Positions 24,611 through 45,761 of a DNA stretch of 64,000 nucleotides are shown here, piece by piece. How positions within the stretch are numbered: the first letter of the stretch is position 1; each line of letters starts with the position of its first letter. A program made the translations under genes and the position numbers. The notes beneath the pieces were generated by a model. The model saw nothing but the letters and a program-made list of their open reading frames with translations, searched no databases and was not told the DNA's origin. The stretch is taken from positions 171,594-235,593 of IMG/VR virus record IMGVR_UViG_3300026518_000006, one strand, 5' to 3'.

Positions 24611-25744
24611 ATGGCTTGTTCATTAGAGGGTGGGTGTGGTAGCTCATCAGAAAGTATTCATATAGATATCAATACTACTAGCATTTGTAATATTGCTTGT
24701 ACTTATTGTTCAGAGGGAAATGAGTGTGGTTTGAGTACTCTATATATGGGGAATACTGAGGTAAAAGTAGAAGACTTGATTAAAAAATTAGGCAAAGACC
24801 CCGCTAAACATAAGACTATAAATTTTTGGGGGGGAGAGCCTTTTGTAAATTTTGATTTCTGCAAAGCTATTATAGACGGTTTTAAAGATGACAAAACATT
24901 TAGTTTCTTTTTTTATACCAATGGGTTGTATATACCAAATTATATCGACCAATTAAAGCGATGGAATGAAGAATTCGGGAAAGAGTTAAACGCTGATGGA
25001 CAAAATAGATTGTATCTTCAAATAAGTTATGATGGGCGACACCTCACAAATACAGTGAGAGTGGATAAAGGCGGTCACGGCACTGCTGATAGAGTTGAAA
25101 AGGCATATAAATTACTAAAAGAAAACAATATAGGAACTTCATTAAAAGCAGTGATTAGCACCGATGGTTTTCCATATCTTTTTGAAAGCTTTAAAGATTT
25201 ATATGAGCTTCAAGGTTTTTATTCACCAACACCTGATTTATGGTCTGATAGAAGTGAAGAAGAGTTCAATACTGATTTAGAAATACTTGGAAAAGAGCTT
25301 GAGAAGATAGCAAAGTATATATACCAAAATGATTTGAGTCCTGAAGTATTTAGTTGGTTTGCTAAATCAAGAGCGATTTGTAGTACAGGTGCGGGTATGC
25401 TTAGTATAGACCTTGATGGTGGCATATACCCTTGTCACGCAGGTATGTATGGTGAAAGCGAAGAGCATAAAATAGGAGAGCTTGAAGATTGGGAACATAT
25501 TAGAGAAAATGTTATGGATGACTTTAAAAAAATTAATACCAATCTTCCATTGGAATGTCAAACTTGTGATGTAAATTATTGTATGAAGTGCCAAATATCA
25601 AACTACGCAAAATCTACAAAAGATACATACGAGGAAAGATTTACAGATTATCAAGCAAATTGGCAGGTTTGCAAAATATTTAAAATGAACGACAAATATA
25701 ATAAAACACTGAGATATGCAATGACACAAAAAGGATTGAGATGA
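24611..25744 (+). CDS. Radical SAM/SPASM enzyme 1
   Basis: CNIACTYC, FWGGEP, TNG, ISYDG; SPASM cysteines CSTG...YPCH...CQTC....CMKC. Confidence 0.93.
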   Translation: MACSLEGGCGSSSESIHIDINTTSICNIACTYCSEGNECGLSTLYMGNTEVKVEDLIKKLGKDPAKHKTINFWGGEPFVNFDFCKAIIDGFKDDKTFSFFFYTNGLYIPNYIDQLKRWNEEFGKELNADGQNRLYLQISYDGRHLTNTVRVDKGGHGTADRVEKAYKLLKENNIGTSLKAVISTDGFPYLFESFKDLYELQGFYSPTPDLWSDRSEEEFNTDLEILGKELEKIAKYIYQNDLSPEVFSWFAKSRAICSTGAGMLSIDLDGGIYPCHAGMYGESEEHKIGELEDWEHIRENVMDDFKKINTNLPLECQTCDVNYCMKCQISNYAKSTKDTYEERFTDYQANWQVCKIFKMNDKYNKTLRYAMTQKGLR

Positions 25745-26364
25745 GTGCCAAACTCACATCTCAAGAGCTCAAAGATAAAGCAAATAAAAACAATCCTGAT
25801 GTGCAAATCATAGGTAAATATATAAATTCCAAAACAAACATCTATGTTATTTGTAAATGTGGCAATACGACATCTGTTAGACCCAGTGAATTATATAAAT
25901 CTTGGCGATGTTTTGAGTGTGGTATAAAAGCAAGAAAATACATAAATGGAAATGGAGGATGGTCAACTAAAAGAAATAAAGAAGCTAAAAACAGAATAAT
26001 TCAAAAACACAAAGAATTATTATCCAAAAAATTGCCACATATTGAGTTGGTAGGAGATTATGAGGACAGTAAAACAAAGACAAATTATATCTGTTTTAAG
26101 GTTGGATTAACTCTTTATAAGTATAATGATGTTACGAAATGTATAAAAAATCGCTTTAGAAAAGAGAATAATAATATACTTCTGTTAGGATATATTATAT
26201 TCAAAAATGGAGCGGAAGGTTATGAGTTGGAGCAAAGAATCTTAAATTCTCATCAAAAATATAACTCGGATATTTTGCAATTTGGTGGTAATTCCGAACT
26301 GTTATCTGAGAATATTATTGCTCTCGATAAATACAAATTCATAAAAACAAAGGAAATTATATGA
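25741..26364 (+). mobile_element. Homing-endonuclease-like gene (zinc-ribbon repeats plus GIY-YIG/T5orf172-like C-terminus), apparently internally truncated
   Basis: YINSKT....CKCG...CFECG repeat; a second repeat runs straight into FKVGLT...RF...ELEQ...GNSEL and lacks the YLY segment seen in 34201-34911. Confidence 0.6.
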
Positions 26365-27660
26365 AAACAAACACAACAAACACAACAAACACACAAAAAT
26401 ATACTGAGCTTCAAGACAATAATATAAAAATGAAGTACAATATGAAAACAAACACAACAAACACAACAACCAAAATTAATACCAAAAAACCAACACAAAA
26501 AAGTAAAGGTAATGGATTTAAAACATTTACACTTGAAGTACAAACAACACAAAAATGCAATTTGGGCTGTCCTCGGCTTTGCCGATAAGTTAATTTTTTA
26601 GTATTTAGAGTAAATACCTTATTGCTATGTAGCAAATAGAGACCTTTTTCTTACACCTGAAGTATTTGATAAAAGTTTCGAAAGAATTATTGATTTAATG
26701 CAGAGAAGTGGCACTACCAATTTGAATATTAGTTTTTTTGGTGGCGAGCCTTTATTAAATTTTGAAGTTATCAAGCATATTACTAAAAGAGTTGAAGCAC
26801 TCCCTATTAGAACAGACTTAGTTTTAATTTCAAATATGACTATGATTACAGAAGAAATTTCAGACTTTTTGTTTGAGCATAATATTGGTGTGTCTTGGTC
26901 TTTCGATGGTATGGGGTCTAATGAAACAAGACCACTTTTGCCTATTTTTGAAAACAAGAATAAAGACGGAAAATTATACAATGGAATTTTAGACCTCTAT
27001 GAAGACAAAAAAGACCTTATTTTAAAGCACACCAACGGCTGTAAAATTATGATTTGGGCAGGAAATATGCACCAAATGAGCGAAAATTTAGACTTCTTTG
27101 TTGATTGGGGTTTAACAGGGCTTGATTACTCATTAGTAAGAGATGATGTGTGGACTAAAGATGATTTGATAGCATTTAGAGGACATCTAAGAGACTTAGC
27201 CGATAAGTATATTCAGTACACAAAAAAAGGTGTCCCTTTACATATAGGTTTTTTTGATTTAGCTATTGGTGATAATGTTATTAACTTTACATTTGGCAAA
27301 AGAGATTTCGGGTGTTTTGCAGGTGTAAATGGTGCAAATATGACACCAACAGGAGAGTTCTACCCTTGTGCTAGATTTGCTACAAAATCACTTATGAAAA
27401 TTGATGATGAGTATGATTTTAATTATTGGGCTGAACAATTTAGACCTGCCAATTATGATAAATGCAAGACTTGTGATATTCAACAAGTTTGTAACGCAGG
27501 ATGTACCTTTAGTCAAGTTAGAAATGACAATAAACCTGTGGATAGTGTTTGTGAGTTGTATCATATGATACAAGAAGAAACGATTAGAATAGTACACGAA
27601 TTAAAAGACAACGAGTTGTTTCAAGAACAGGTTATGTCATTATTTAACAATATGGGGTGA
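26361..27660 (+). CDS. Radical SAM/SPASM enzyme 2, interrupted by a 46-nt coding gap (join 26361..26573, 26620..27660; about 417 aa)
   Basis: CNLGCP ends at 26573 and YCYVANRD resumes at 26620, in frame with the 26698..27660 ORF (FFGGEP, SFDG, CFAG...YPCARF, CKTC....CNAGC); joining restores CNLGCPYC. Confidence 0.88.
26574..26619 (+). other. Candidate programmed translational bypass (hop) element
   Basis: CCT take-off (26571-73) and CCT landing (26617-19); hairpin TCGGC-TTT-GCCGA then TAA; hairpin GTATTTA-GAG-TAAATAC; GAG 6 nt before the landing codon. Confidence 0.7.
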
Positions 27661-28046
27661 TTATGGTGGGTTATATTTTAGAGTTTATATTTGAGTTATT
27701 GATTGGAATAATTACTATTGTAACAGCGTTGGTTATTATTATATTTGGGTTTGTATTTTTGTCTGTGGCAAATCTATTTGATAAATTATCTGATAAATTA
27801 TCTGATAAATTCTTTAGTAAAATAGAAACAAAAAAGGATAAAAATTGAGTTGTGAAACTGAACACAAAAACATAGATATAAATGATTTAGAAACAATGTT
27901 ACAAGAAGCCCGTAAAGGCAGAGCCAAAATAGACAAACAATATGTAGATTTTGATGAAAAAGGTCATTTGTTTGAATACAATATAGACTTTAATCAGTTT
28001 TTAGATGATATTAATTATATATTTAAAAAACACAAAGAGCGAAGTA

Positions 28047-28877
28047 GTGGACAAAAGAAATAATATCAGCACTCAAAATACCAACCTTGTGTATTTTACC
28101 ACAGCCTGCAATCTAGGGTGCACATATTGTTTCGAACAACTTGACAATATAAAACCAAAGCACATTCCAATACAAGAGTTGTATAAGATTGCAGACCGAG
28201 TTATAGAAGCTGAAGACCCCAACCTACAAACTCATTTTGTATTATATGGTGGAGAAGCAACACTTCGTTGGAAAGAAGCTGAACTCTTTATGGAATATGC
28301 ACACTCAAAAAAGAACAATGTCACATTTAACCTAATCACAAATGGAATATTGTTTTTAGATGATGAGTTTTTTAAGAATTTCTTTAGTAATAAATATTAT
28401 AATAATGGTATGCTCAGTATTGATATCTCATTTGATGGAGATAAGGGTAATGTTGAGCGTGTGTATAAAGATGGTGGAAGTAGTACTGAAGATGTTATTA
28501 TGGTTTTCAGTAAACTTAAAGTTTATAATCTTCGTTGGAGATTACGATACACAATTCACAAAAAAAACATAGATACTTTTGTTTATGATATTAAGAAATT
28601 GATTAAACATTTCAAACCCGAAAGAGTAATAAAAAATGTAGTATATCACGAACTTGATGAAAACGACCTATCTATGTTGGAGAAAGGCTTTGAGGAACTA
28701 AAGAAGAATTGGGATAACAAAAAAGACACTCCTATTTGTGATTTAGTTTGCGATACTTGTGATGGGTGTTCTATGACATTTGAAAACTATGCTAACCATA
28801 CTCCTGTAGGCACAAGCGTACATCCCAAGCAACAAGCTAAAATATATGATACTCTTGATAAACTAAAATATAAATAA
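28047..28877 (+). CDS. Radical SAM enzyme 3
   Basis: CNLGCTYC, YGGEA, TNG, ISFDG; C-terminal CDLVCDTCDGC; probable GTG start at 28047. Confidence 0.9.
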   Translation: MDKRNNISTQNTNLVYFTTACNLGCTYCFEQLDNIKPKHIPIQELYKIADRVIEAEDPNLQTHFVLYGGEATLRWKEAELFMEYAHSKKNNVTFNLITNGILFLDDEFFKNFFSNKYYNNGMLSIDISFDGDKGNVERVYKDGGSSTEDVIMVFSKLKVYNLRWRLRYTIHKKNIDTFVYDIKKLIKHFKPERVIKNVVYHELDENDLSMLEKGFEELKKNWDNKKDTPICDLVCDTCDGCSMTFENYANHTPVGTSVHPKQQAKIYDTLDKLKYK

Positions 28878-29270: not shown

Positions 29271-29783
29271 ATGAGTGATTGGCTAAAAAATCCATACGGA
29301 ACCCCAGGAGGAGACGAAAAAACTTATTCTTCTGAAGAATTAGCTCAAATGGGGGTAAATATAGGTGAGTTAATCACCAATGAAAAATTCAATTATTTAT
29401 CAGGGAAAGTTAAAAACGAATCTGCAAGAAGAGGTGTGGGGGTACCTGATTATGAGCGAAATGACGGTGAACTTATCACCGCTGTGGATTACAATGTGAT
29501 AATTGACAGAATTAATAATGTGTTGGATATTCCGAGAAACCCTGATGGAGCAGATTTACCACATTTGTCAAATGTTGCTATTGGAGATTTAATAACCGCT
29601 TTAATTCACAATAATATAAAAAACAAGCTTGTTGATGCAGGAAATCAATGTATGTGTAACTGTAATTACTGTGCTTGTAACTGTAATCAGTGCATCTGTA
29701 ACTGTAATCACGCTTGTGTGTGTAACTGTAATTATTCTGATGAACGACTTAAAACAAATATCGTTTATATAGGTGTTTTTTAA
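29271..29783 (+). CDS. Cys-rich protein ending in the first motif of a Peptidase_S74 chaperone domain; candidate radical SAM substrate
   Basis: Three G(E/D)LIT....N repeats, then CMCNCNYCACNCNQCICNCNHACVCNCNY (12 Cys) and SDERLKTNI. Confidence 0.75.
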   Translation: MSDWLKNPYGTPGGDEKTYSSEELAQMGVNIGELITNEKFNYLSGKVKNESARRGVGVPDYERNDGELITAVDYNVIIDRINNVLDIPRNPDGADLPHLSNVAIGDLITALIHNNIKNKLVDAGNQCMCNCNYCACNCNQCICNCNHACVCNCNYSDERLKTNIVYIGVF

Positions 29784-30082
29784 TGTTTGGTTGGAATTTT
29801 ATAAAGGCATTAAAGCCCGCCAAATATGAGTACTCAAGTGTGGATGATAATCTTGAAATATCGAAAGATGGTAGAACTCATTTTGGAGTTATGGCGCAAG
29901 ATATTGAAGAATACCTGAAAAGTGTTTCTGATGAAGATTTCGCTATAATAGAAAAAGACGAAAACGGGTATATGATGGTAAATTATACCGAGCTGATTGC
30001 CCCTATGATAGCCACTATCCAACAACTTCAAGAAAGAGTGGAAGAACTAGAAATCCAAGTTTCTAACCACTCTTCAAAATAA
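29783..30082 (+). CDS. Remainder of the Peptidase_S74 / intramolecular chaperone domain
   Basis: FIKALKP..YEY, HFGVMAQDIE, VNYTELIAPMIATIQQLQERVEELE; TAATG overlap with the upstream gene and AGGTG SD. Confidence 0.85.
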   Translation: MFGWNFIKALKPAKYEYSSVDDNLEISKDGRTHFGVMAQDIEEYLKSVSDEDFAIIEKDENGYMMVNYTELIAPMIATIQQLQERVEELEIQVSNHSSK

Positions 30083-30087
30083 TCACC

Positions 30088-30140
30088 AACCTCTTTTAAA
30101 GATTTTACTTTTTTAAAAAGTAAAATATTTCAAAGAGGTT
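30088..30140. repeat. Extended palindrome copy after the S74 gene
   Basis: AACCTCTTT...AGATTTTACTTTT-TTA-AAAAGTAAAATAT...AAAGAGGTT. Confidence 0.85.
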
Positions 30141-30757
30141 GTTTCTTCAAAAAAATTTAAGCCTATTTTTATATAATAATTCAATTTAACATAAGGTATT
30201 ATAATGCTATTCGAGATAAAACGAAACGACAACAAAATTTATATTTTAGGTAAAGCTACTTCAAAAAATGAAAGTTCCCTTGAGTTTGATGATAGTTTAG
30301 AGGCTGTAGTAAATGAAAATAGAGAGAAAAATAAGATAGTATATTATGACACTAATCTTGACAAAATTAAAATTGAAGACTCAAAGTATAGAGATATTCC
30401 GGTGACAGACTTTAATCGAGTAAAAGCCCTTAAAAAGGCTAGATTGGATTTAGAAAGTATCGTAAAAGATGTGGATATGATTGACTACATCAGATATATT
30501 GATTGCAATAACGAGCTTAATTCAAAAGGTTATTTTGTGACCGATGAAAATCGTGAGGAGGTTTATCTTGATATTTTAGAAAAAGGTGACGAAAAAGTGA
30601 TTGATATCCTTGAAGAATTTCTGATTACTAAAGATAAACTTACAATTATAAAATCAGCCAAGAAAAGATATGATGAGCTTGAAGAGGAAATTAAAGCGTC
30701 AAGTGAAGAAAATTTGGACACAAAAAAATTAAGTGAATTGTTGAATATAGAGTTCTA

Positions 30758-31561
30758 ATGGAACATATAGGAGTATTCTACGATTTAATACCACACAAAA
30801 AAATAAACGGAAGTCTATTTTACGCTTTTGAATATTTTGTATTTTTAAATAAGTTTAAAAAAACTGTATTTTATATTTCTAATATTAGAGATGAGTATAT
30901 TGGTGAATTAAAAGAGGTATTTAAAAATAGATATAATTTCAATAATCATCTACTTGATAGAATAATTGCGATAAAAACTATAAAGCAATATACACTGATA
31001 AACAAAAATATCAAAAAGGCTTTGTTTGTAGATGTCCGTAGTTACGAAAACATCCACGCTTTTTTAAATTGTCCACTAGTGATATACTCAAATGAGGCGC
31101 ACGAAATAACCACCAAAAAACCACACAAAGTATTTGGGTACTATGACTATCAAAATTTCCAAATCAAAGAAAAACTAAAGTTTAATTTTGAGATATATAA
31201 GCCCATATCGAACAAGAAAACAAACACTGCACTTGTAACAAGAGTATTGGGAGCTGAAAATGTTATTCATAAAATAGACATAAAAGAAAACAATATAATA
31301 TATAAACCTAAAGAACACGCTATAGAAAGTGTTTTTGAAAAATTTGACACACTGTATTATTATCACAGCTTCTTGGACACAAATAATCGCCTTATAGTTG
31401 AAAGTTTATATTACAACAAGAATGTTGAAATTATATATACAGGACTCAAAAAAGATAGTGTTTATTATCGTTATAATGATATTATGAATAACGGGGTAGA
31501 CGGGTATCGTCTGACAAAAGATGATTTAATAATTCAGGAAATGCTAAGTGAAAATAGTTAA
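30758..31561 (+). CDS. Putative glycosyltransferase-like protein (paralog A)
   Basis: Shares G..F...EY and F..FDT..Y...R.I.E..YY.K.V motifs with the next gene; resembles the GT-B C-terminal domain. Confidence 0.4.
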   Translation: MEHIGVFYDLIPHKKINGSLFYAFEYFVFLNKFKKTVFYISNIRDEYIGELKEVFKNRYNFNNHLLDRIIAIKTIKQYTLINKNIKKALFVDVRSYENIHAFLNCPLVIYSNEAHEITTKKPHKVFGYYDYQNFQIKEKLKFNFEIYKPISNKKTNTALVTRVLGAENVIHKIDIKENNIIYKPKEHAIESVFEKFDTLYYYHSFLDTNNRLIVESLYYNKNVEIIYTGLKKDSVYYRYNDIMNNGVDGYRLTKDDLIIQEMLSENS

Positions 31562-32438
31562 ACTTGACGGTGATTTAACTTTGACTTATAGTTGGAGTAA
31601 CAATAATCACGGTATTTGTGGACACACTTTTGAAGTAATTGAGTACTACTTTATACTGAAGGACTTTTTTGATACAAACATTTTATTATGTGAAGATATT
31701 ACACCTGAAATATTTAAATCGGCTATTGAGGACAAATATGATTTCACAAAAGAAGAAATTGCAGATATTTTAAACAATACAAAGTTTATTAATAGACCTA
31801 TATTATTAAAAGGAAAGAATATTTTATTTGTTGATGGTGGAATTATTAACACCAACAACTACACTCTCCTATTTGACAATATTTTTTACTTTGCTTGCGG
31901 GAATAAAGAGGTCAAACATAACAATAAAAACAATGTTTATATTTTACAAGATGATAGAGTATATGAGCCTGTTGTTAAGAATGGCATAAATTATAAAAAG
32001 AAGTTATTATTTGATAGAATGAAGCCTATCAAAAACAATAAAACAGCAAATCTAATCTATGTTACAAAGAATTGCCGTGATATAAATGATGAGGTATTTA
32101 AAGAGCTTGAAAAAACCTACGATGGAAACTTTTTATACTTAGGAAATGAAGAAAAATACACCTCAAATAGATTTAAATTTATGAAAATGCCCGTCCGTAA
32201 CCTTTTTAGTGAGTTTGACACCTACATATATACTGAAGTTCCAAGACACTTTGATTGTAGCCCAAGGTTCATAGCTGAATGCAAATATTATGATAAAAAA
32301 GTAATATACCACAACATCTATTATTTAGAAGAAGATTTAGGATTAAAGTGGAGAAAGTATGATATAGAAAATGACTTTAATTCACTATTCTTAACTAAAG
32401 ACGATGACTTAATACCTATTATAAAGAGTATAATATGA
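31548..32438 (+). CDS. Putative glycosyltransferase-like protein (paralog B)
   Basis: GHTFEVIEYY...FSEFDTYIY...SPRFIAECKYYDKKV. Confidence 0.4.
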   Translation: MKIVKLDGDLTLTYSWSNNNHGICGHTFEVIEYYFILKDFFDTNILLCEDITPEIFKSAIEDKYDFTKEEIADILNNTKFINRPILLKGKNILFVDGGIINTNNYTLLFDNIFYFACGNKEVKHNNKNNVYILQDDRVYEPVVKNGINYKKKLLFDRMKPIKNNKTANLIYVTKNCRDINDEVFKELEKTYDGNFLYLGNEEKYTSNRFKFMKMPVRNLFSEFDTYIYTEVPRHFDCSPRFIAECKYYDKKVIYHNIYYLEEDLGLKWRKYDIENDFNSLFLTKDDDLIPIIKSII

Positions 32439-33061: not shown

Positions 33062-33075
33062 ATTAGAGGTGTAAT

Positions 33076-34131: not shown

Positions 34132-34200
34132 ACACTATTAAAGATGTAATTAAGTTTGATTAATTAAAATAATTAATCAAAACATAAGGTTAAACACAGT

Positions 34201-34911: not shown

Positions 34912-35032
34912 GGTTGAAATGGTATTATTCATTAATAATTTGTTAATTAATGTTGTATTTTATTAACAGATTACAAATAAAATAAGTCATTCGACTAAAA
35001 AACAAAAAATCCCAAGAGGTAAAGGAATAATT

Positions 35033-37893: not shown

Positions 37894-38931
37894 CAGAATA
37901 TGATGAGTTAAAGACTGTAGTAGTTGGAAGAGATTTTGACTGCAACTATATTATTGACAAAGAACTAAAATACTCATTAACATTGAAAGGTGATTTTGAT
38001 TATGATAAATTCTATAATGATATTAAAAAGAATTTAAGAGAGCGAAATGAATCACTTGATAAGTTATCAGAAATATTGGAAAGTAAAGGCGTTAAAGTAT
38101 TTAGACCAAAATACAACTCTTATGATGAGATAGTTGATGACTCAGGTAAAGATGTTGCTGATACTCAGAATTTTGATAGCAATGCCCGGGATATTTTTAT
38201 AGTTATCGAGGATAAAGTGATTATTGCGCCTACATTTAACTCAAGAAGAAATAAGTTATATAAACTCTATGAAAATGTGTTTGAGTATTTGTTGGGAAAA
38301 GGGTATAAAATAATTTATCCTCCTGAAACAAACGGAAAGCGTGATTTCGATTATTACCCTATCACAACTCCTGTTGATTTTTTTGTTGAAAAAGCTCACG
38401 ACTATGTTTGAGACAGCCAATTTAATCAAAACAAAAGATGGAGTTGTGTTTAATATAAGTAATCATAATCATTATAGTGGTTATCTTTGGTTTAAAGAAA
38501 TTGTTGATTGTGATGTTTTTCCTTGTTTTGTTGATTATGGTCATATAGATGGGGGAATGAATATAGTCAATGATGACTTATTACTATTATGTTTTAACTC
38601 AGACCATATATCTGAATCTGAAATATTAAAAAAAATACCAACACCATTTAAAAAATGTGATGTAATAACGGTTGACAAAAATCCTAAATCATATAAAAGA
38701 AAAACCGATGTATTTTTGGCTTCAAAGGGAGGAATGGAAATAAACAGTTTATCAATAAATCCAAACACTATTATAATATCAAAAAATAAATCTTTAAAAA
38801 AGAAGCTTAATGATAGAAATATAGATGTTATCGAAATGTCGTTAAAACACGATAGACTGTTTAATGGAGGTGTGCATTGTGTTACTGTAGACTTAGAAAG
38901 AAGTGATGATGAATCCACACTATCAATTTAA
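37890..38931 (+). CDS. Amidinotransferase (glycine/inosamine-phosphate type), frameshifted into two ORFs near 38378-38410
   Basis: EYDELKTVVVG, GVKVFRP and ARD in ORF1; FETAN, HIDG, N.LSI and GGVHCVTVDL in ORF2; removing one T from the T7 run at about 38378 fuses them. Confidence 0.8.
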
Positions 38932-39727
38932 CTATTACATCAATACCATTTGCAATCAGTATTGTGATTATTGTTATGCACGAAATGGGTATGAATGGAA
39001 TAAAATAAAACCTTTAAGGACTATCTTGACAGAATTAAGTTGGTTCAAAGAATTTAAGCATAAATCTATTATAACTCTTATTGGAGGAGAGCCTACTTTA
39101 CACCCAAAATTCAATGAAATAGTCACATTTATAGCTGAAAATCTTGACCATTATTTGCATATATATACAAACGGACAATTTAATGTAGATAAAGTGTCTC
39201 ATACACTTAAACATAATGCGCTTTGGACTTTCAGTTATCACGGTAAATATGTGAAAGATGAAAAATTATTTATAAAGAACATCGAGTATTTTATAAACAA
39301 TAATATAGATTTTAATATTACTATTATAGCGCAAAACACGATTTCTGATGAGTTTTTCAATTTTTTGAAAAACAATAATTTAAAAGAAAAGGTATCAGTG
39401 ACATTTATCCACGAATCAAATGATTATACACCAAACGAAACAATTAATTCGATATTCTTCAGTGATTGGTTCAAAAACACCAAAAATATGGTAAGTTTTT
39501 ATGATGATAACTATTTTAAGAAAAATGCAAGATATAAAGGTCGCAAATGCTATTACAATGAGATTGATATATTGGATGGAAAAATACACTCTAATGAATG
39601 TAATATAGATTTTTGTGAGCCATTTACAAAAGAAGCACTGTTGCAATTACCGCCTTTTTCTCCTGTTGTTTGTGATAGAGACTATTGTAAACAAGATTGT
39701 GCTTTTCTGTTCCCAAAGAAGGTATAA
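38903..39727 (+). CDS. Radical SAM enzyme 7
   Basis: CNQYCDYC, IGGEPTLHP, TNG, SYH. Confidence 0.9.
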   Translation: MMMNPHYQFNYYINTICNQYCDYCYARNGYEWNKIKPLRTILTELSWFKEFKHKSIITLIGGEPTLHPKFNEIVTFIAENLDHYLHIYTNGQFNVDKVSHTLKHNALWTFSYHGKYVKDEKLFIKNIEYFINNNIDFNITIIAQNTISDEFFNFLKNNNLKEKVSVTFIHESNDYTPNETINSIFFSDWFKNTKNMVSFYDDNYFKKNARYKGRKCYYNEIDILDGKIHSNECNIDFCEPFTKEALLQLPPFSPVVCDRDYCKQDCAFLFPKKV

Positions 39728-39728
39728 A

Positions 39729-40679
39729 ATGCAAACTTACAATAACAAAGAAATTGTTAAATTTTATAATAGAAATGAAATTAAAGACCATAATTTTTTA
39801 ATATTTGAACTACTTATAATAGAGGTGTGTAATCTACATTGTTCTTATTGTTATATGCGAAATGAAAGCCCCACTTGGGAAAGTATATACCGAAAAGAAA
39901 AAATCACAGCTATTATAGAAAAATTATCGTCTTTAAATAAACCAGTATCAATTTGTTTGAGTGGAGGTGAAGCAACACTCAGCCCACATTTTATGTATTT
40001 TGTAAAATTGATAACTACACATATAAAAAATCCAAACAGTGCTATAAAGAACTTGCATATAAACACAAACTTCAGATTGTCTAAAGAGAAGATAAAAGAA
40101 ATTCAGTCTATAAATCCTAATGTTACATTTCACATATCTTACCACAGCTCTGACGAAACACCACAAGATGAGTTTATAGAAAAGTTATTATTGTTGCCAT
40201 CTGAACATAGAGAGCTAAATATTATGTTGCACCCAAAAAAATCTGAACTTAAAAAAACCGAAAACTTTATCCAAAAATGTATCGAAGCAGGTATAAACTT
40301 TTATGTCAAACCTGTCTATATAAATGGAAAATATAAACCCCAAAAACACGCCCTTGAAATTATTGAGAAGTATTCTCAATATACCACTAAAGAATATATA
40401 ATAGAAAGTAAAGAAGATAAAACACCAATGAATGATTGGGATTTATACCAAAATAATTTGATACCTTTAGATACTTTTGGTTATAACTGCAAATATACTT
40501 TTTTTACTATTGATGGTAATGGGTATATCAAACAGATGTGTAAATTGTTTGATATCAATAATATTTTTGATGATTTTCAATTTTTCTTAGACTATAATAT
40601 AAAAGATGGTATAATATGTCCATTTAAAAATTCTTGCCTATGGGCTTCGTCTTTAGACCACTTAAAAGAGAAGATATGA
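39729..40679 (+). CDS. Radical SAM enzyme 8
   Basis: CNLHCSYC, LSGGEATL, NTN, SYH; probable start MQTYNN at 39729. Confidence 0.9.
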   Translation: MQTYNNKEIVKFYNRNEIKDHNFLIFELLIIEVCNLHCSYCYMRNESPTWESIYRKEKITAIIEKLSSLNKPVSICLSGGEATLSPHFMYFVKLITTHIKNPNSAIKNLHINTNFRLSKEKIKEIQSINPNVTFHISYHSSDETPQDEFIEKLLLLPSEHRELNIMLHPKKSELKKTENFIQKCIEAGINFYVKPVYINGKYKPQKHALEIIEKYSQYTTKEYIIESKEDKTPMNDWDLYQNNLIPLDTFGYNCKYTFFTIDGNGYIKQMCKLFDINNIFDDFQFFLDYNIKDGIICPFKNSCLWASSLDHLKEKI

Positions 40680-41581
40680 CATACAATAATCAACATACAA
40701 CAATAGTGATTCCAATTGAAAACCATAAACAATTATTAGTACAAACTATAATTTTGATAAGAAGTATAAGACAAAATATCCCAAACAGAAGAGTGTTAAT
40801 AATCAATCACAACAATTCCAATATACCCGAATGGTTTATAAAGCTATTGGATGATGAAGAGTTGATAAATATATCTTTGACTAATAACAAATGGTATTAT
40901 AAGAAAGAAGCTTATTTTTTACTTATGCCCGAAACACTAAAATATGTAAATGAAAATTACAACTTAGATGCCTATTTATTTTTAGACCCCGACACTATAA
41001 TCACAGAGTCTTTACCACCCGCCTCAAATAGTGTAGATGTCTTCAAAACACCGATGAATGAGTACACAGACTTATTACTTTATATGTTTTCTATAGAACA
41101 CCCTGTAATAAAAAAGAACTACACACATTTTGACACTTTTTGTATTTATTCTAAAAACAAAGATTTTATTAACGATTGGTATGAAGAATCAGTAAAACTT
41201 TCCAAATTCAAAAGTAAAATTAATGAGCGTTTTCAACATTTTTGTGAGGAGTTGGCTATTACTATATTAATGGATAAATACACTATAACGAGTCAAGTTT
41301 CAAACGCTTTTTTGGACACAGAACCAATTATGTTTAAACCTGTTTATCATTATGATAATCTCAAAAACATATACAACCATCTACCAAAAAAAGACAAAAT
41401 ATTAGTAGATGTTATATTAAAAGGTGAGTATATGGGGGAGGACAAACACTACAGGGTCATAAATAATTTAGATGTTATAAAAAAAGAAATAGAAGATTTT
41501 ATCAAATATGAAAAATCACCAATCTATTATGAAACAATTAGAACACTACGGTACAAAACCCCATATGATTTTATAGATTAG
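40676..41581 (+). CDS. Putative GT-A (GT8-like) glycosyltransferase
   Basis: LIRSIR...YLFLDPDTI (DxD)...EE.A...YHY. Confidence 0.55.
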   Translation: MTYNNQHTTIVIPIENHKQLLVQTIILIRSIRQNIPNRRVLIINHNNSNIPEWFIKLLDDEELINISLTNNKWYYKKEAYFLLMPETLKYVNENYNLDAYLFLDPDTIITESLPPASNSVDVFKTPMNEYTDLLLYMFSIEHPVIKKNYTHFDTFCIYSKNKDFINDWYEESVKLSKFKSKINERFQHFCEELAITILMDKYTITSQVSNAFLDTEPIMFKPVYHYDNLKNIYNHLPKKDKILVDVILKGEYMGEDKHYRVINNLDVIKKEIEDFIKYEKSPIYYETIRTLRYKTPYDFID

Positions 41582-41589
41582 GAATAAAA

Positions 41590-42579
41590 ATGAGACAGTA
41601 TGATTTTAATTATATTGATAGCAAAGTAGTTGGGTTTATGATAAATGATATTTGTAATATGGCTTGTACTTATTGTTATCAACAAGCAAACAATTTATGT
41701 GAAGACGACCACAAAAAAAATAGAGCTCTTATTGATAAAGTGCTTGATTATGTTGTGCATCTATCAGAAGTAGATAGACCTCATCAGATAAGCATAGAGG
41801 GAGGGGAGCCATTTTTTGATACACAAACATTAGAATACTTTTTCACACAGGTTGAAAAAAAATTAAAACAATACCCAAATTTTTATTCAAGGATATTAAT
41901 TGTAACAAACGGGACTAAAAGAGATAATATAAAATACATTATAGATAAATTTGATTTTAGTGCTTTCAATGTCACAATGGAAGTATCATTACATTATACG
42001 CAAATGTCAAATACAGCACTAAAAAAATTCACATCTAATGTTGTGGAATTTAAAAAATATATTGAGTATGTTAGAGTATTGGCACCATTAAGCCTAAAAA
42101 AGCTCCCAAAATACCTAAATATTATATTGAAAGTGTTAGATTTGCACGATGTATATTATTTTTTTGCACCAATTGTAGGATTAAATGAAATTAATGAGAT
42201 ATATGATATGAGTGGTTTTCCTTTTAAGGGTGAGGTAGATGTTTTAATAAATGGGGAAACAAAGAATATCAATGCAATATACGACAAATCACTAACAACT
42301 GACGGTATGGTGTGTGAAAATAATCAGTGCTTCTTTTTTTATAATACAGGGGATATAAAAATGTTTTCCTGTATTAATAATAGAGAAACAAAAAATATCT
42401 TCAAAGATAGTTTTGATGATATTTTTCAAATGGATAAACGAACAATATGTACTCTTGATTATTGTATGGACTGTAATTTGAATACAAAATATGAGATGTC
42501 TGAGTTAGACCCAAACAATAAAGACGATGCTGACTTAATAAAATATTACATAGAGCAACGAAATAATACATCTTTCTAA
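41590..42579 (+). CDS. Radical SAM enzyme 9
   Basis: CNMACTYC, EGGEPF, TNG, SLH; C-terminal Cys cluster. Confidence 0.9.
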   Translation: MRQYDFNYIDSKVVGFMINDICNMACTYCYQQANNLCEDDHKKNRALIDKVLDYVVHLSEVDRPHQISIEGGEPFFDTQTLEYFFTQVEKKLKQYPNFYSRILIVTNGTKRDNIKYIIDKFDFSAFNVTMEVSLHYTQMSNTALKKFTSNVVEFKKYIEYVRVLAPLSLKKLPKYLNIILKVLDLHDVYYFFAPIVGLNEINEIYDMSGFPFKGEVDVLINGETKNINAIYDKSLTTDGMVCENNQCFFFYNTGDIKMFSCINNRETKNIFKDSFDDIFQMDKRTICTLDYCMDCNLNTKYEMSELDPNNKDDADLIKYYIEQRNNTSF

Positions 42580-42643
42580 TTCCTAAACATTGCCATAAAA
42601 CTATTAAAAGTATTTTTAAAGGTAATTTATGGCATAATAAAGT

Positions 42644-43339
42644 ATGAGTTTAGAAACAAAAGAATTATTAAAATACTCTTATAAAAATAAGTTGGCACAT
42701 ATACCGAGTGCGCTTTCAATGGCTCCCTATATCAATGCTGTATTTAATACAAGAGTAACAAAAGATGATATTATAGTTATAGGTAAACCATTTGGGTCAC
42801 AGGCATATTATCTGACTTGGAAGAAGTTGGGTTGGATAGATGACATTGAATCATTAAGTGTAGGTGTAAAACACGATGAAATTGATTTTGTGGACTACTC
42901 TGAAGAAACTATTGGTAACGCATTGGGTGTAGCCATAGGATTGGCATTAGCTAACCCGAATAAATTGGTCTATGTAAACCTCAGCGATGGTGCTCTACAG
43001 ATGGGAAATACCCTTGAAGCCATTCAATTTATAGGACATAATAATATAAAAAATATTTTTGTAACCGTTGATATGAACAATTATCAGGTTACGGGTAAAA
43101 CTACTGATATAATTGATGTTGCACCTGTGATGAAGTTGTGTGAAGAATATTCTTGGCAAGTTGGTGGGGTTACAGGGTTTTATAAAGATATTTTAGAAAC
43201 TTATTTTAAATCAATGACATTTATAGGCAAACCTAAAATTGTCTTTATATCAACAATAAAAGGCTATGAGGTTCCATCTATGACTAAAGACCCTGTTAAG
43301 TGGCACTATAAGAAATTAGAGCCTGAAGATATGGTTTAG
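42644..43339 (+). CDS. Transketolase-like N-terminal (TPP-binding) subunit
   Basis: AHIPSALS, IGNALGVAIGLA, SDG..QMG..LEA...DMNN.Q, TIKG...WHY. Confidence 0.85.
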   Translation: MSLETKELLKYSYKNKLAHIPSALSMAPYINAVFNTRVTKDDIIVIGKPFGSQAYYLTWKKLGWIDDIESLSVGVKHDEIDFVDYSEETIGNALGVAIGLALANPNKLVYVNLSDGALQMGNTLEAIQFIGHNNIKNIFVTVDMNNYQVTGKTTDIIDVAPVMKLCEEYSWQVGGVTGFYKDILETYFKSMTFIGKPKIVFISTIKGYEVPSMTKDPVKWHYKKLEPEDMV

Positions 43340-43348
43340 GAGAAAATT

Positions 43349-43612
43349 GTGAAGATAGAGCCAAATGATTTAGTGCAATACAAAATAGAAGACCACAGTG
43401 ACAGCAGTCTAAAATATGGTGTTATTGAACATATATCGTAGCGCAAAGATACAAATAATGATATGCTATCAGGCACAATTGCTTTATGGAAAATAAAAAA
43501 TAAAGGCTGTATTAAACAAATGTATCTACTTTCACATTTTAAAGTTATTGAAAATTTTGGTAAAATAACCCCCGCTGAATTCAAAAAACAATACCCTGAG
43601 AGGTTTATATGA
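43349..43612 (+). pseudogene. Small PEYFI-tag gene with an in-frame TAG at 43439-43441 (absent from the ORF track)
   Basis: AGGAG SD and GTG start; reads MKIEPNDLV...EHIS*RKDT...KKQYPERFI. Confidence 0.6.
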
Positions 43613-44410
43613 GATTATACAAGAACAAAAAACTAATGGTTGCCGTAGATGACAATCTGCAAAGTTGGACGAAAATAACCGACAACCCAAACAGCATATT
43701 CAACAATAGTGATAAATACACTCCAAAAGGATATGTGATAAAGATAAAAAAAGACTTTTGTATTTGCAGAGTAGGTTTTGAAACAACTCCTGTTATGGAA
43801 TTATACTATGTTGGTGTTTTTTACAATGAAGATGATTTAAAGAAACTTATACCTGAGAATTTTGTTTAATTATGAGAATATATATTAATAACCAAAAAGA
43901 AACTCCCTTAATGGTGGGCTTGACAGACGACCTTAGACATCATTCAACTGTATCAACTAAAACCAAAGATTTATTTATCACTTTAAAAAAGGTGTATTTA
44001 AAAGATGTTTCAGAAAAATATTGTTATTATACCTCTAAGTATTCTTACAGTGAGATGGGAGGTACTATAAAATTCAAGTACATAGGTCAGGTTGAAAAAG
44101 AGGAAGATGTAATGAGTCTTATAGCGGAGTATTTTATATGACTAAAGAACTCGTGGTTGGCGAATATTGTGTATATGACTATGAGGGTGTTGTGATATTA
44201 ACCAAAATAGAAAAGAATAAAGAATATTTTGGTGGAATTCAAGCTGTGGATATATTTAAAGTTAATAAAGGAGCTGAAAATCCACACATAGACATAATGA
44301 CATCTCCTTGGGAAATTGCGAAGGTCATCACATCAAATGGAATAGATGTACTGGGCGTTTTTAAGAATAAAGAGGAAATGTTGAAAGAATTTGGAGAATA
44401 TTTTATATAA
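43609..44410 (+). CDS. Three small hypothetical genes (43609-43869, 43872-44141, 44138-44410) with PEYFI-type C-termini
   Basis: Ends IPENFV, IAEYFI, FGEYFI; located between the two transketolase halves. Confidence 0.75.
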
Positions 44411-44476
44411 AATATATGAGTTTTATAATATCAAAATAGAGGGCGGTTAATTAGCCTATATTTTAAAAGGACTAAA

Positions 44477-44956
44477 ATGAGAGCGACTTTAGATAAGTTT
44501 TTAAGACGAGTTAAAAATGAAGATATTTGGTTTCTTCACGCTGATATGTGGGGGTTTGACACATCAAAATACCCTAATTCTTTGAATTGTGGTATACAAG
44601 AGCCTACAATGGTTAATATAGCTTCAGGGTTAGCCTCACAAGGAAAAAAGGTTATAATCTACGGGGTAGCGGGTTTTGTGTTGTATAAAGCATACGAACA
44701 AATAAAATTTAATGTTAAAGGTTGGGCTGAAAACTACGGAAGTATTATTTTTGTAAATGCAGGTCATAATGGGTGTTATTCTGTTGCGGGAAGAGGACAC
44801 TTGGTTGAAGATGACTACAAGCTTTGTGATGCTTTAGATTTAGAGCTCTCTACCCCTATGTGTAGAAAGGAATTTTTGAGAGAAGTAAAATTGGGGTTAA
44901 AAGAAAATGGAGCAAAATTTATAAGATTAGGGTGGGATGATGAAAAGTGGCAATGA
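44477..44956 (+). CDS. Transketolase-like pyrimidine-binding subunit
   Basis: LHADM, NCGIQEPTMVNIASGLASQG, KAYEQIK, GH...D, FIRL. Confidence 0.85.
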   Translation: MRATLDKFLRRVKNEDIWFLHADMWGFDTSKYPNSLNCGIQEPTMVNIASGLASQGKKVIIYGVAGFVLYKAYEQIKFNVKGWAENYGSIIFVNAGHNGCYSVAGRGHLVEDDYKLCDALDLELSTPMCRKEFLREVKLGLKENGAKFIRLGWDDEKWQ

Positions 44957-45761
44957 TTTATATGTGGTTTTTGGTGGAACAGGTGTAATAGGAAAAAGTC
45001 TTATAAAAAGATTGGTGTCCGAAAATAAAAAAGTGGTGAATATAAGCCGTGTAAACAAAAATGAGCAAGCTAATAAAAACTATCAGTTAGATTTGGGCAC
45101 CGCTTCTTATGATGATATTATGCGGTTGTATACGAAAATCAGAAATGATTTTTCGGAATATGTTATAAAAGGTACTTTTTATTTAGCAACTTACTCCACT
45201 TCAGAGAAGATGAGCAAAAAGCAATTAGAAAATGAACCTAATGTTGTTGACAATATTATTGGATTATTTGGTGAGCCGTTTTTATATATGAGCTCTTACG
45301 CTGTTATGGATGATACAAAATTTAAAAGTGGTGATGTTAAGATAAATTATAGAAGAGCTAAAACAAATACCGAAAAAGTTATAACTAATTTTTCTGAATT
45401 AGAGGTTTATGCTTTGCGTGTTCCTGCTGTTTATGGTGGCTCTGATAATCATAGAGCAGTCTATAAAATAGCGGAAAGATTAAAAAATAATAAAGATGTG
45501 TGTATTCACGACAATAAGATATTGTTTGTTTATCTTAAAGAAGTTGTAGATGAAATTATGTCGATTTACTCAAAAGATGGGTTGTTTCCCAACTCTTATG
45601 AAGATTTTGATTTAGATAATGTGTTTGTTCTTGAAAAACAAGAATTGCCGTTGTTGAATATTGTGTTCAATCTAAAGACTGTCTTTAAAAGTTCATCTGA
45701 TATAATTATAGATATATCAGATGAAGAGGACGCATTTATCAGAACAATACTCAACGATTGA
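44937..45761 (+). CDS. NAD-dependent epimerase/dehydratase (extended SDR)
   Basis: GGTGVIG, YMSS.AV, YRRAK (YxxxK), LRVPAVYG. Confidence 0.85.
   Translation: MMKSGNDLYVVFGGTGVIGKSLIKRLVSENKKVVNISRVNKNEQANKNYQLDLGTASYDDIMRLYTKIRNDFSEYVIKGTFYLATYSTSEKMSKKQLENEPNVVDNIIGLFGEPFLYMSSYAVMDDTKFKSGDVKINYRRAKTNTEKVITNFSELEVYALRVPAVYGGSDNHRAVYKIAERLKNNKDVCIHDNKILFVYLKEVVDEIMSIYSKDGLFPNSYEDFDLDNVFVLEKQELPLLNIVFNLKTVFKSSSDIIIDISDEEDAFIRTILND

Follow-up and report, generated by a model that had tools for sequence, protein, structure and literature searches.

A 21-kb block of nine co-oriented radical SAM (rSAM) genes and sugar enzymes was identified at 24611–45761 of the window, i.e., the 64,000-nucleotide stretch analyzed here, which is the end of a 235-kb T4-like phage record from hydrothermal-vent metagenomes (IMGVR_UViG_3300026518_000006). 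In over a hundred related virus contigs, this block sits next to a virion fibre protein that ends in cysteine/asparagine repeats, which suggests why these phages hoard such enzymes. The presence of many rSAM genes in Campylobacter Firehammervirus has been known since 2010 with no function assigned, and what is new here is the organizing centre of the block, namely ORF 29271, which ends in C-x-C-N-C-N-Y heptads followed directly by an S74 chaperone domain. We consider the block, with moderate confidence, to be a RiPP-like maturation cassette for this protein, although its chemistry is inferred and no modification has been observed.

Gene content of the island

The preliminary description listed nine co-oriented rSAM genes, one degenerate copy, four glycosyltransferase-like genes, an amidinotransferase, a two-part transketolase and an SDR epimerase, and this observation was confirmed, as all of these genes are present on the + strand. 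Its end coordinates coincide with copies of a genome-wide palindromic element at 24483 and 46050. All rSAM genes of the 235-kb record lie in this block. The features are as follows.

24424–24531 (no strand), left boundary, repeated intergenic element containing the palindrome GATTTTAnTTTTTnAAAAAGTAAAAT
24611–25744 (+), rSAM1, radical SAM enzyme with a full SPASM domain (377 aa)
25741–26364 (+), homing-endonuclease-like ORF (207 aa), part of a presence/absence cassette
26361–27660 (+), rSAM2, SPASM radical SAM enzyme with an added N-terminal extension, interrupted by a 46-nt coding gap (26571–26616)
27845–28063 (+), small conserved ORF (72 aa) between rSAM2 and rSAM3
28005–28877 (+), rSAM3, radical SAM enzyme with a short C-terminal 4-Cys cluster (CX3CX2CX2C)
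29271–29783 (+), Cys-repeat fibre protein (170 aa)
29783–30082 (+), rest of the Peptidase_S74 intramolecular-chaperone domain, as a separate ORF
30204–30758 (+), conserved 184-aa protein directly after the fibre gene, possible fibre-assembly factor
30758–32438 (+), two GT-B-fold glycosyltransferase-like genes (30758–31561 and 31548–32438)
32435–34131 (+), rSAM4 (208 aa) and rSAM5 (351 aa)
34201–35614 (+), lineage-specific insert, a homing-endonuclease-like zinc-finger ORF (34201) and an outer-membrane beta-barrel protein with a signal peptide (35033)
35680–36369 (+), degenerate radical SAM fold (predicted) without CxxxCxxC
36366–37001 (+), GT2 glycosyltransferase
36994–37893 (+), rSAM6
37890–38931 (+), pentein-type amidinotransferase in two ORFs (37890–38411 and 38341–38931)
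38903–40679 (+), rSAM7 (38903–39727) and rSAM8 (39729–40679)
40634–41581 (+), GT-A-like gene
41590–42579 (+), rSAM9
42644–44956 (+), two-part transketolase-like ThDP enzyme, PP domain 42644–43339 and Pyr domain 44477–44956, with three small paralogous ORFs (43609–44410) between the halves
44937–45761 (+), SDR epimerase/dehydratase-family gene
45980–46098 (no strand), right boundary, second full copy of the repeated element and palindrome

The CxxxCxxC motif and a Pfam Radical_SAM hit were found at 24611, 28005, 32435, 33076, 36994, 38903, 39729 and 41590. The start previously placed at 28047 is an internal GTG of the gene at 28005. The Pfam scores were 43 bits for rSAM1 (plus SPASM), 54 for rSAM3, 41 and 63 for rSAM4 and rSAM5, 54 for rSAM6, 49 each for rSAM7 and rSAM8, and 33.7 for rSAM9. 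rSAM6 is paralogous to rSAM7 and rSAM8, and the latter two carry the CxxxCxxC and GGE motifs. For rSAM1, the best NCBIfam hits were the PapB, CXXX-repeat and SCIFF maturases, all below their cut-offs, and the closest solved structure was 5WGG (E 3e-12). rSAM2 and rSAM3 matched NCBIfam PapB at 1.4e-30 and 9e-19, respectively, and rSAM3 and rSAM9 matched 5WGG at 1.3e-9 and 2.9e-5. With a profile, the nearest solved structure to rSAM5 was BlsE (1.8e-14), with SkfB and viperins close behind. ORF 35680 gave no sequence-family hit, but its structure model matched a viral rSAM cluster at TM 0.81, so that the term "degenerate copy" is right.

The ninth gene (26361/26698), rSAM2, is real but is interrupted by 46 nt inside its CxxxCxxC motif. 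Joining the two CCT codons gives CNLGCPYC and a 417-codon frame without stops, and intact orthologues read KCNLGCPYCYVANR. Variants without the 46 nt exist in sequencing runs X3 and X4, and positions 25749–26516 are absent from the run X3 contig. The adjacent ORF 25741, which was not in the preliminary description, matched phrog_559 "HNH endonuclease" (E 1.7e-11), is a paralogue of ORF 34201, and uses the start codon that rSAM2 uses in element-free strains. This homing-endonuclease cassette with its coding gap has the known features of T4 gene-60 translational bypass.

Among the remaining genes, GT2 was confirmed by Pfam Glycos_transf_2 (2e-10), with homologues in 39 related loci. The two GT-like genes at 30758 and 31548 matched phrog_14526/24441 and, by structure, viral Glycos_transf_1 proteins (TM 0.66–0.68), and they are conserved next to the fibre gene in most loci. 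The gene at 40634, previously called GT8-like, gave no Pfam or NCBIfam hit and is only 30% identical to CP220 gp088, which is annotated with a nucleotide-diphospho-sugar transferase fold. The two amidinotransferase ORFs matched successive halves of phrog_25854 and of CP220 gp086, annotated "possible glycine amidinotransferase", and hence represent one split homologue. The ThDP halves were confirmed by Pfam and NCBIfam transketolase hits; they are adjacent in the related locus L050, and their CP220 homologues are gp072 and gp141. The SDR was confirmed by Pfam Epimerase (9.5e-9). The insert at 34201–35614 and the three small paralogues between the ThDP halves were also absent from the preliminary description. 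This insert matched Pfam DUF4379 and OMP_b-brl (2e-19) and had no best-hit homologue in the related loci, where rSAM5 is usually followed by GT2; homologues of the outer-membrane protein are named from Sulfurovum/Campylobacterota. The 72-aa ORF at 27845 has a best-hit homologue at the same position in 47 related loci. The 184-aa protein at 30204 has one in 91 related loci; it showed only a weak structural likeness to DUF4376 and tail-fibre-assembly clusters (TM 0.46), and no Pfam hit was obtained in 21 members.

The boundary elements belong to direct repeats (D2/D6), of which the right copy is 80–87% identical to that at 24424–24531, and a TATAAT-like box follows the left one at about 24580. 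About 21 copies of the palindrome occur in the genome, but in this region only at 24483, 30094 and 46050. The palindromes bracket the island and split it directly after the fibre/chaperone pair, a transcription-unit-like structure. The earlier suggestion of two sub-modules, with the first three rSAM genes clustered with the Cys-rich ORF and the later ones interleaved with glycosyltransferases, also holds, but with a different boundary: the element at 30094 separates unit A (three SPASM rSAMs, the fibre and its chaperone; 24.6–28.9 kb for the enzymes) from unit B (everything else; 30.2–45.8 kb). Unit A plus the first genes of unit B is the conserved core, and the rest varies.

The Cys-repeat protein and its association with rSAM genes

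ORF 29271 consists of a helical N-terminal domain, four C-x-C-N-C-N-[YQH] heptads at 29649–29735, and the start of the S74 chaperone (SDERLK, 29736–29753). The rest of the chaperone is encoded by the next ORF, whose ATG overlaps the stop (TAATG), and which matched Pfam PF13884 with 28 bits against a cut-off of 22. This split is identical in three independent assemblies and was also observed in loci L014, L019 and L018, while the two parts are fused in P0006, P0007 and others. In an AF2 model, the N-terminal part had pLDDT above 90 and the heptads about 45. The fibre assignment rests on the S74 domain and on the virion proteome, and the N-terminal domain gave no structural match. ORF 29271 belongs to a family of 210 clusters at 50% identity, whose members have 2–21 C-[T]-C-[N/D]-C-N-[Y] heptads followed directly by an S74 chaperone start (SDxRLK) or by the end of the protein. 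The repeats therefore form the mature C-terminus.

A DNA pattern for two heptads alone recovered 40 IMG/VR loci. Of the 39 with a complete ORF, 37 contained homologues of the window's rSAMs, and 35 had one within 1.5 kb. Conversely, loci fetched with an rSAM2 profile contained a heptad ORF in 32 of 35 cases at 50% identity or more, in 8 of 16 at 33–50%, and in 2 of 28 below that, and several of the distant loci instead carry a variant C-x-C-N-x-x array in the same position. Such a fall-off with rSAM2 divergence is expected for an enzyme–substrate pair. Gene order varies (rSAM2-rSAM1-Cys; rSAM2-rSAM3-rSAM1-Cys; 1–4 tandem Cys genes) and the flanks differ, but adjacency is kept. However, all loci appear to come from one broad lineage of large T4-like phages, and many IMG/VR loci are near-duplicates, so that part of the synteny may be inherited rather than selected. 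The array is essentially virus-only, as the same pattern hit 1 of 185,579 prokaryote genomes, on a 9.6-kb MAG contig that also has rSAM1 and rSAM2 homologues.

The orthologue in Campylobacter phages is a virion protein. Gene 3-9 of phage IBB_35, which is 94% identical to CP220 gp140 and carries the heptads, was detected by MS/MS in purified virions, while none of the genes listed as rSAM in that study was.

Proposed role of the cassette

The preliminary description offered three possible targets of the pathway, i.e., a virion protein (the Cys-rich ORF), phage DNA or the host surface, and this interpretation is partly supported; comparative genomics favours the first. In our view, the island is a conserved, essentially virus-specific maturation cassette for one fibre-like virion protein, whose mature C-terminal tip is an array of C-x-C-N-C-N-Y repeats. 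The S74 chaperone would help the repeat region to fold, and the three CteB/PapB-like SPASM enzymes of unit A would install radical cross-links in the array, most likely Cys-S to carbon thioethers onto Asn, Thr or Tyr, as in ranthipeptides and sactipeptides. Unit B, with its putative assembly factor, two GT-B enzymes, GT2, GT-A-like gene, six more rSAMs, amidinotransferase, ThDP enzyme and SDR, would build and attach unusual sugars to the same tip or otherwise tailor it. In this reading, the distal part of unit B is swapped between related phages, which would diversify the chemistry of the tip, and with it receptor binding or resistance to host proteases. The gene content, the synteny, the reciprocal co-occurrence and the virion location of an orthologue are shown, while the identity of the substrate, the cross-link chemistry, the glycosylation and the biological role are all inferred. 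Several points weigh against this view, among them the lack of any observed modification, the rSAM family scores far below the curated cut-offs and the partly scattered genes of Firehammervirus. No RiPP recognition element or leader peptide was identified, and the substrate would be a folded protein of 170–534 aa rather than a short peptide. A sugar or nucleotide role for unit B is not resolved by rSAM5, which is about equally close to BlsE, SkfB and viperins.

It is less likely, though possible, that the Cys-repeat array is a metal- or iron-sulfur-binding structural element that needs no enzymatic modification, or even serves as a cluster donor for the many Fe-S enzymes. The rSAM and sugar enzymes would then make a separate small molecule or glycan and be adjacent only through inherited gene order. 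C-x-C spacing is typical of metal-binding sequences, marine T4-like genomes with 12 rSAM genes also carry Fe-S assembly genes (Nishimura 2017), and both the single lineage of the loci and the scattered genes of CP220 fit this reading. Against it stand the adjacency kept through rearrangement, the fall-off of the association with rSAM2 divergence, the Cys-repeat peptide substrates of the nearest characterized relatives of the unit A enzymes, and the location of the protein in the virion, which is not that of a cytoplasmic scaffold.

Hypermodification of phage DNA, in which the glycosyltransferases would act on a modified base, is considered unlikely. A thymidylate-synthase homologue and a dNMP kinase lie at 12.6–15.2 kb, relatives carry fully modified DNA (dADG in CP220), and rSAM enzymes occur in DNA-hypermodification pathways. 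However, the CP220 modification is explained by a separate QueD/QueE/DpdA3 route, and an ORF comparison covering the 7-deazaguanine DNA-modification genes QueD and QueE of CP220, but not DpdA3, found no counterpart of either in this 86%-complete genome. The island holds no transglycosylase, DNA-binding or nucleotide-kinase gene, and its conserved core is built around a virion protein. An equally unlikely reading is host-directed action, either anaerobic metabolism (Timms et al. 2010 suggested a metabolic benefit at low oxygen) or capsule/LOS modification for superinfection exclusion, for which the sugar enzymes, the host-like outer-membrane protein gene and nearby PIG-L and DegT genes speak, but against which stand the lineage-specific nature of the outer-membrane protein insert beside a homing-endonuclease-like ORF, outside the conserved cassette, the lack of any rSAM match to a host metabolic family above its cut-off, the near absence of the heptad-array pattern from prokaryote genomes, and the lack of a flippase, polymerase or lipid-carrier gene in the island.

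Comparison with characterized maturases and Firehammervirus

The best family and structure matches of rSAM1, rSAM2 and rSAM3 are Cys-repeat peptide thioether maturases (PapB, CXXX-repeat, SCIFF and 5WGG), and rSAM2 orthologues keep the seven SPASM cysteines. All rSAM family scores are nevertheless far below the curated cut-offs (for example, PapB 81–107 bits against 340), so that the enzymes belong to no characterized maturase family. The phage is not a Campylobacter phage but a distant hydrothermal-vent relative of Firehammervirus, about 25–48% identical in protein sequence. rSAM1 is an orthologue of CP220 gp136, rSAM5 is 48% identical to CP220 gp163, and the Cys-repeat protein corresponds to gp140. 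In Firehammervirus the genes are partly scattered, with the rSAM2 orthologue 29 kb from gp140, and gp140 lacks S74. As to the variability of the downstream module, Timms et al. 2010 found that the "five rSAM plus amidinotransferase" cluster is the largest difference between CP220 and CPt10, exchanged as a module.

Gene content of the island and its genome

The + strand from 24611 to 45761 is densely packed with co-oriented ORFs, and the observation in the preliminary description, that nine radical SAM (rSAM) enzymes are grouped there with a degenerate copy and a set of sugar-tailoring genes, was confirmed. The following features were assigned on the + strand, where a single coordinate marks the start of the ORF.

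24611: rSAM1, radical SAM enzyme with a full SPASM domain
25741: homing-endonuclease-like ORF
26361/26698: rSAM2, one SPASM-type radical SAM gene split by 46 nt inside its cluster motif
28005: rSAM3, radical SAM enzyme with a 4-Cys cluster only
29271: Cys-repeat protein (170 aa), putative fibre
29783: remainder of the Peptidase_S74 intramolecular chaperone
30204: conserved ORF following the fibre gene
30758 and 31548: two genes with a GT-B fold by structure
32435: rSAM4
33076: rSAM5
34201-35614: second homing-endonuclease-like ORF (zinc finger) and outer-membrane beta-barrel gene
35680: ORF with a radical SAM fold by structure (TM 0.81) and no sequence hit
36366: GT2
36994: rSAM6
37890-38931: pentein amidinotransferase in two ORFs (37890 and 38341)
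38903: rSAM7
39615/39729: rSAM8
40634: indirectly GT-A-like gene
41590: rSAM9
42644 and 44477: transketolase-like PP and Pyr domains of a ThDP enzyme
43609-44410: three small paralogous ORFs between the ThDP halves
44937: SDR

The Pfam Radical_SAM model (PF04055) scored 33.7-63 bits for eight of the nine rSAM genes, above the gathering threshold of 29.5 bits, whereas the 26698 fragment alone scored 22 bits because its N-terminal part lies before the gap. The CxxxCxxC motif is present near the N-terminus of these eight genes as written, present in rSAM2 only if the 46-nt gap is skipped, and absent from 35680, while a GGE motif was found in all nine. A search of the whole 235,593-b virus record showed that every rSAM gene of the genome lies in this block. 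The two amidinotransferase ORFs overlap at a T7/A5 run, and the second may start at an ATG in an ATGTTTGA overlap; a frameshift, an error and a true split all remain possible. The three ORFs between the ThDP halves are 86-90 aa long and end in ENFV, EYFI and EYFI; the two halves are adjacent in a related complete genome (locus L050). The endonuclease-like ORF at 34201 is a paralogue of 25741, and the neighbouring host-like barrel gene, of an 8-strand type with a signal peptide, has its closest named homologues among porin-family proteins of Sulfurovum and other Campylobacterota; this pair is an insert not seen in the related cassettes. Directly after the island, on the - strand (46094-46642), lies a 182-aa protein made of six 20-residue (60-nt) leucine-rich-repeat-like units, each with a conserved Cys (NQITSFEFCPDIKGD).

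The 64-kb stretch forms the end of an IMG/VR record estimated to be 86% complete, which was found in hydrothermal-vent metagenomes from three studies and shares 81 ORFs at about 22-49% identity with Campylobacter phage CP220. A megablast search of the island against 50,697 phage genomes gave no match, and among the same number of deposited phage genomes only Firehammervirus phages and a few faecal fragments have an rSAM2 homologue. A ThyA-type thymidylate synthase and a dNMP kinase lie on the + strand at 12631-15208. Further sugar genes lie outside the island, namely a PIG-L deacetylase and a DegT aminotransferase piece (207 aa, matching only positions 163-239 of the 360-position model) on the - strand at 20094-21343, and an epimerase, a deacetylase and a UDP-glucose dehydrogenase elsewhere in the genome.

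An AT-rich perfect palindrome, GATTTTACTTTTTnAAAAAGTAAAATC, lies within a repeated intergenic element of ~110 nt preceded by TTTTGAG repeats. It was found at 4982, 16031, 19697, 24483, 30094, 46050, 53024, 57768 and 60271, with about 12 more copies in the genome (about 21 in total), and its contig depth is about 5-fold higher than that of the flanks. It may be an operator or a transcription-unit boundary. In this region it occurs only at 24483, 30094 and 46050, and it brackets the island and separates unit A (rSAM1-3, fibre, chaperone) from unit B. Across relatives, unit A together with ORF 30204, the GT-B pair, rSAM5 and GT2 are the commonest parts, while the amidinotransferase, the ThDP enzyme and the remaining rSAMs come and go. 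This agrees with the report of Timms et al. 2010 (PMC2853527) that the "five rSAM plus amidinotransferase" block is exchanged between CP220 and CPt10. Membership of ORF 30204 in DUF4376 was considered, but was not confirmed in 21 family members.

The Cys-repeat protein

In the monomer AF2 model, ORF 29271 has a confidently predicted helical N-terminal domain (pLDDT above 90) and a poorly modelled C-terminal stretch, with pLDDT of about 45 for the repeats; a fold search with this model gave nothing significant in the PDB or BFVD. The C-terminal stretch consists of the four heptads CMCNCNY, CACNCNQ, CICNCNH(A) and CVCNCNY, and is followed at once by SDERLKTNIVYIG, the start of a Peptidase_S74 intramolecular chaperone. 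The first ~15 residues of this domain (29736-30082) end the fibre ORF, and the rest is the separate ORF 29783, which starts at a TAATG overlap and scores 28.0 bits against the Pfam cut-off of 22; a fused homologue scores 29.4 bits. An exhaustive HMMER search found 210 clusters of relatives, in which C1, C3, C5 and N6 define every counted heptad, position 4 is N or D, position 7 is mostly Y, and 2-21 heptads occur per protein. Three architectures were observed, namely S74 fused, S74 split off after about 12 residues, and the protein ending at the last heptad, and in every architecture the mature C-terminus is the repeat array. A frameshift from a homopolymer sequencing error at 29783 was rejected, since the sequence is identical in three independent assemblies and the same split recurs in many divergent relatives: in the related loci L014 and L019 the second ORF also starts at a TAATG overlap, and in L018 it has its own Shine-Dalgarno spacer. 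Some relatives carry three or four tandem Cys-repeat fibre genes in place of one (L031:4685-7285; L037:7386-9455).

The family member in CP220 is gp140 (534 aa), which has seven CxCDCNY heptads plus further CxCN motifs and no S74 domain. It lies between a ThDP-Pyr homologue and the RnlA tail-fibre attachment gene, 2 kb from the rSAM1 orthologue. Its orthologue in phage IBB_35, gene 3-9, is 94% identical and is listed among the 38 proteins identified by MS/MS in purified virions, at 2.6% coverage, whereas none of the six listed rSAM genes of that phage is on the list. This virion evidence applies to the Firehammervirus orthologue only.

Association between the repeat array and radical SAM genes

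Related loci were sought first with peptide patterns of the Cys-repeat ORF, which were unsuitable and gave no confirmed relative, and by tblastn with the low-complexity filter, which also found nothing. A degenerate DNA pattern for two heptads instead found 40 IMG/VR loci; of the 39 with a complete ORF, 37 hold rSAM homologues and 35 have one within 1.5 kb. In 185,579 prokaryote genomes the pattern occurs once, on a 9.6-kb MAG contig that again has rSAM1 and rSAM2 homologues. In the reverse direction, 79 loci were fetched with an rSAM2 profile, and a heptad ORF lies within 10 kb in 32/35 at 50% identity or more, in 8/16 at 33-50%, and in 2/28 below that. Several of the distant loci have in the same slot a variant array of four C-x-C-N-x-x-type units before SDERLK (L117:12323-13027, L119:12369-13202, L129 and L130:12369-13097, L108:12296-12826), and C-x-C-N therefore looks like the minimal conserved unit.

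Contigs carrying family members show the same order as the window, i.e., rSAM/SPASM, rSAM, small ORF, rSAM, small ORF, Cys protein, a protein of about 185 aa, two of about 270-300 aa, rSAM, rSAM, GT2 and more rSAMs. Order within the cassette and the flanking genes vary, while adjacency is kept. These counts are, however, not independent events, because many loci are near-duplicates and the contigs appear to be fragments of large phage genomes (19-53% complete); the one complete genome tested (G005, 214 kb) is T4-like, with Gp23 and seven rSAMs within 12 kb.

The radical SAM enzymes

The seven-cysteine SPASM motif (C..G....C, CX2CX5CX3C, C) is present in rSAM1 and rSAM2 and invariant in 13 rSAM2 orthologues, whereas rSAM3 has only a 4-Cys cluster. 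The best models for rSAM1-3 are PapB, CXXX-repeat, SCIFF and related Cys-rich peptide maturases, and the nearest solved structure is 5WGG. The latter is CteB, the SCIFF thioether maturase. All scores are nevertheless far below the curated cut-offs (PapB 80.7, 106.7 and 67.8 bits against 340; SCIFF 58-63 against 425), so these are new families. No leader peptide or RiPP recognition element (RRE) was found: the conserved small ORFs 27845 and 28892 gave no Pfam hit, and the rSAM motifs start at residues 26-35, which leaves no room for an N-terminal RRE. For rSAM5, the most conserved, a profile search against solved structures placed BlsE nearest, with SkfB and viperins close behind, and did not separate a sugar-acting relative (BlsE) from a peptide-acting one (SkfB). 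rSAM6-8 are paralogues of one another (E-values of 5e-9 to 6e-13), to which rSAM9 is only marginally similar (1.3e-5 to 6e-3).

A candidate translational bypass in rSAM2

Reading from 26361 onward gives KCNLGCP, then CGG, a hairpin (CGGC-UUU-GCCG) and UAA. The CCT at 26571 is matched, after 46 nt, by a second CCT at 26617 followed by TAT TGC, which restores CNLGCPYC. The joined product reads CNLGCPYCYVANR, intact orthologues read exactly KCNLGCPYCYVANR, and the joined frame is open for 417 codons. CGG is the rarest sense codon in the genome (0.54 per 1000), the hairpin is -6.4 kcal/mol, the AU-rich 3' part of the gap contains no C and no landing triplet, and GAG lies 6 nt upstream of the landing codon. 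Folding of the whole region around the gap was no better than shuffles (z = -0.07), and only the local hairpin is notable. The 46 nt are unique in the genome, which excluded a repeated mini-element.

A contig from another study (run X3) lacks both the endonuclease-like ORF region (25749-26516) and exactly the 46 nt, with 11 differences in the 54 nt between them against 6 in the next 3074 nt; a contig from run X4 also lacks the 46 nt. Without the element, rSAM2 would start at the ATG now used by the endonuclease ORF. The endonuclease cassette carries, at 26072-26128, a 79% identical copy of the promoter-like region upstream of rSAM1 (24531-24587), ending in TATAAGTATAATG, and the X2 strain has 354 extra nt near 26088. 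Bypassing by ribosomes is only inferred from these sequence features; if it does not occur, this strain has eight working rSAMs.

Interpretation

The gene content, synteny, co-occurrence, virus specificity and virion location of an orthologue are shown, whereas the repeat array as substrate, the chemistry of its modification, its tailoring and its diversification are inferred. In this view, unit A would install radical cross-links in the array, for which thioethers are likeliest; Cys-to-Asn beta-thioethers occur in NxxC peptides. Three cysteines per heptad would fit three unit-A enzymes. Unit B would glycosylate or otherwise tailor the tip, and module swapping would diversify it. No chemistry is observed, and shared ancestry inflates the synteny counts, which is the main weakness of this view.

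The preliminary description had proposed a virion protein, phage DNA or the host surface as the target of modification, and this proposal is supported only in part. Three alternatives were considered. The array may be a metal-binding element with unrelated enzymes as neighbours. DNA hypermodification was also weighed, and here a link to the 7-deazaguanine pathway of CP220 was rejected, since neither QueD nor QueE of CP220, the only genes of that pathway compared, has a homologue among the 81 shared ORFs of this 86%-complete genome. The last is a role in host metabolism or surface remodelling.

A more far-reaching reading, possible but on balance doubtful, is that large T4-like phages build the receptor-facing tip of a fibre as a ribosomally made Cys/Asn repeat array, which a dedicated set of up to nine radical SAM enzymes and several glycosyltransferases then cross-links and decorates. 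The array would then be a virion-borne, RiPP-like structure whose chemistry is diversified by swapping enzyme modules, and one of the enzyme genes would carry the first gene-60-type bypass cassette found outside topoisomerase genes.

The island as such is a compact relative of a known but unexplained feature of Firehammervirus. In the papers searched, which covered open-access text only, no description was found of the link to a Cys-repeat virion protein, of the split S74 chaperone or of the bypass-like cassette. Why Campylobacter group II phages and many marine T4-like phages carry up to a dozen radical SAM genes has been asked since 2010, and linking these genes to one defined virion protein makes the question accessible to simple experiments on a culturable system (CP220/IBB_35 gp140). 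If this reading is right, RiPP-type radical chemistry would extend from secreted peptides to virus structural proteins, new enzymes that cross-link folded proteins would be supplied, and a new route of host-range variation through enzymatic decoration of a fibre tip would be suggested. The bypass candidate would show that gene-60-type recoding is not confined to one gene.

Comparison with known systems

The multi-rSAM clusters of the Firehammervirus phages CP220, CPt10 and IBB_35 (PMC2853527), to which no function was assigned in the literature searched, contain homologues at 25-49% identity of rSAM1, 2, 3 and 5, the amidinotransferase, one GT-B-like gene, the GT-A-like gene, both ThDP halves and the Cys-repeat protein. 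The co-oriented block of several rSAM genes with the amidinotransferase and GT-A genes is homologous to CP220 gp080-gp089 (tblastn hits at 25-33% identity), and the local order amidinotransferase - rSAM - GT-A is kept. All rSAMs sit here in one 21-kb block next to the Cys-repeat gene, whereas in CP220 they are spread over at least six places, and CP220 also has QueD/QueE for dADG DNA. The host here is probably a vent Campylobacterota, not Campylobacter.

With the SPASM thioether maturases of Cys-rich RiPPs (PapB/freyrasin, CteB/SCIFF, CXXX-repeat and Cys-every-fifth systems), the island shares the radical SAM core with a seven-Cys SPASM domain and an enzyme gene lying next to a gene for short tandem Cys-containing repeats. 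It differs in that the putative substrate is the C-terminal tip of a virion protein with a folded N-terminal domain and a self-cleaving chaperone, that three to nine rSAMs are present instead of one, and that the system is viral, not bacterial.

In tail fibres and tailspikes with a C-terminal Peptidase_S74 chaperone (K1F endosialidase, T5 L-shaped fibre), as here, the S74 domain follows directly after a repetitive region and begins with an SD-x-R-L-K motif. In the window and many relatives, however, the chaperone is split off as its own translationally coupled ORF, and the preceding region is a Cys/Asn heptad array, not a known beta-helix sequence.

The element at 25749-26616 shares with the MobA/gene 60 bypass cassette of T4-like phages (Manning & Atkins, bioRxiv 10.1101/2022.08.31.505936) a homing-endonuclease-like gene (phrog "HNH endonuclease"), an N-terminal extension on the downstream ORF, a recoded target region, a gap of about 50 nt with matched take-off and landing codons, a rare codon and a hairpin after take-off, an AU-rich 3' gap free of landing triplets, and GAG 6 nt before the landing codon. 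It is inserted in a radical SAM gene, whereas all known cases are in the topoisomerase II large subunit, and tblastn of the endonuclease ORF against the phage collection matched only one unannotated metagenomic record and no T4-type phage. The take-off codon is CCU (Pro) rather than GGA or GAU, and it lies just 5' of the stem rather than in it.
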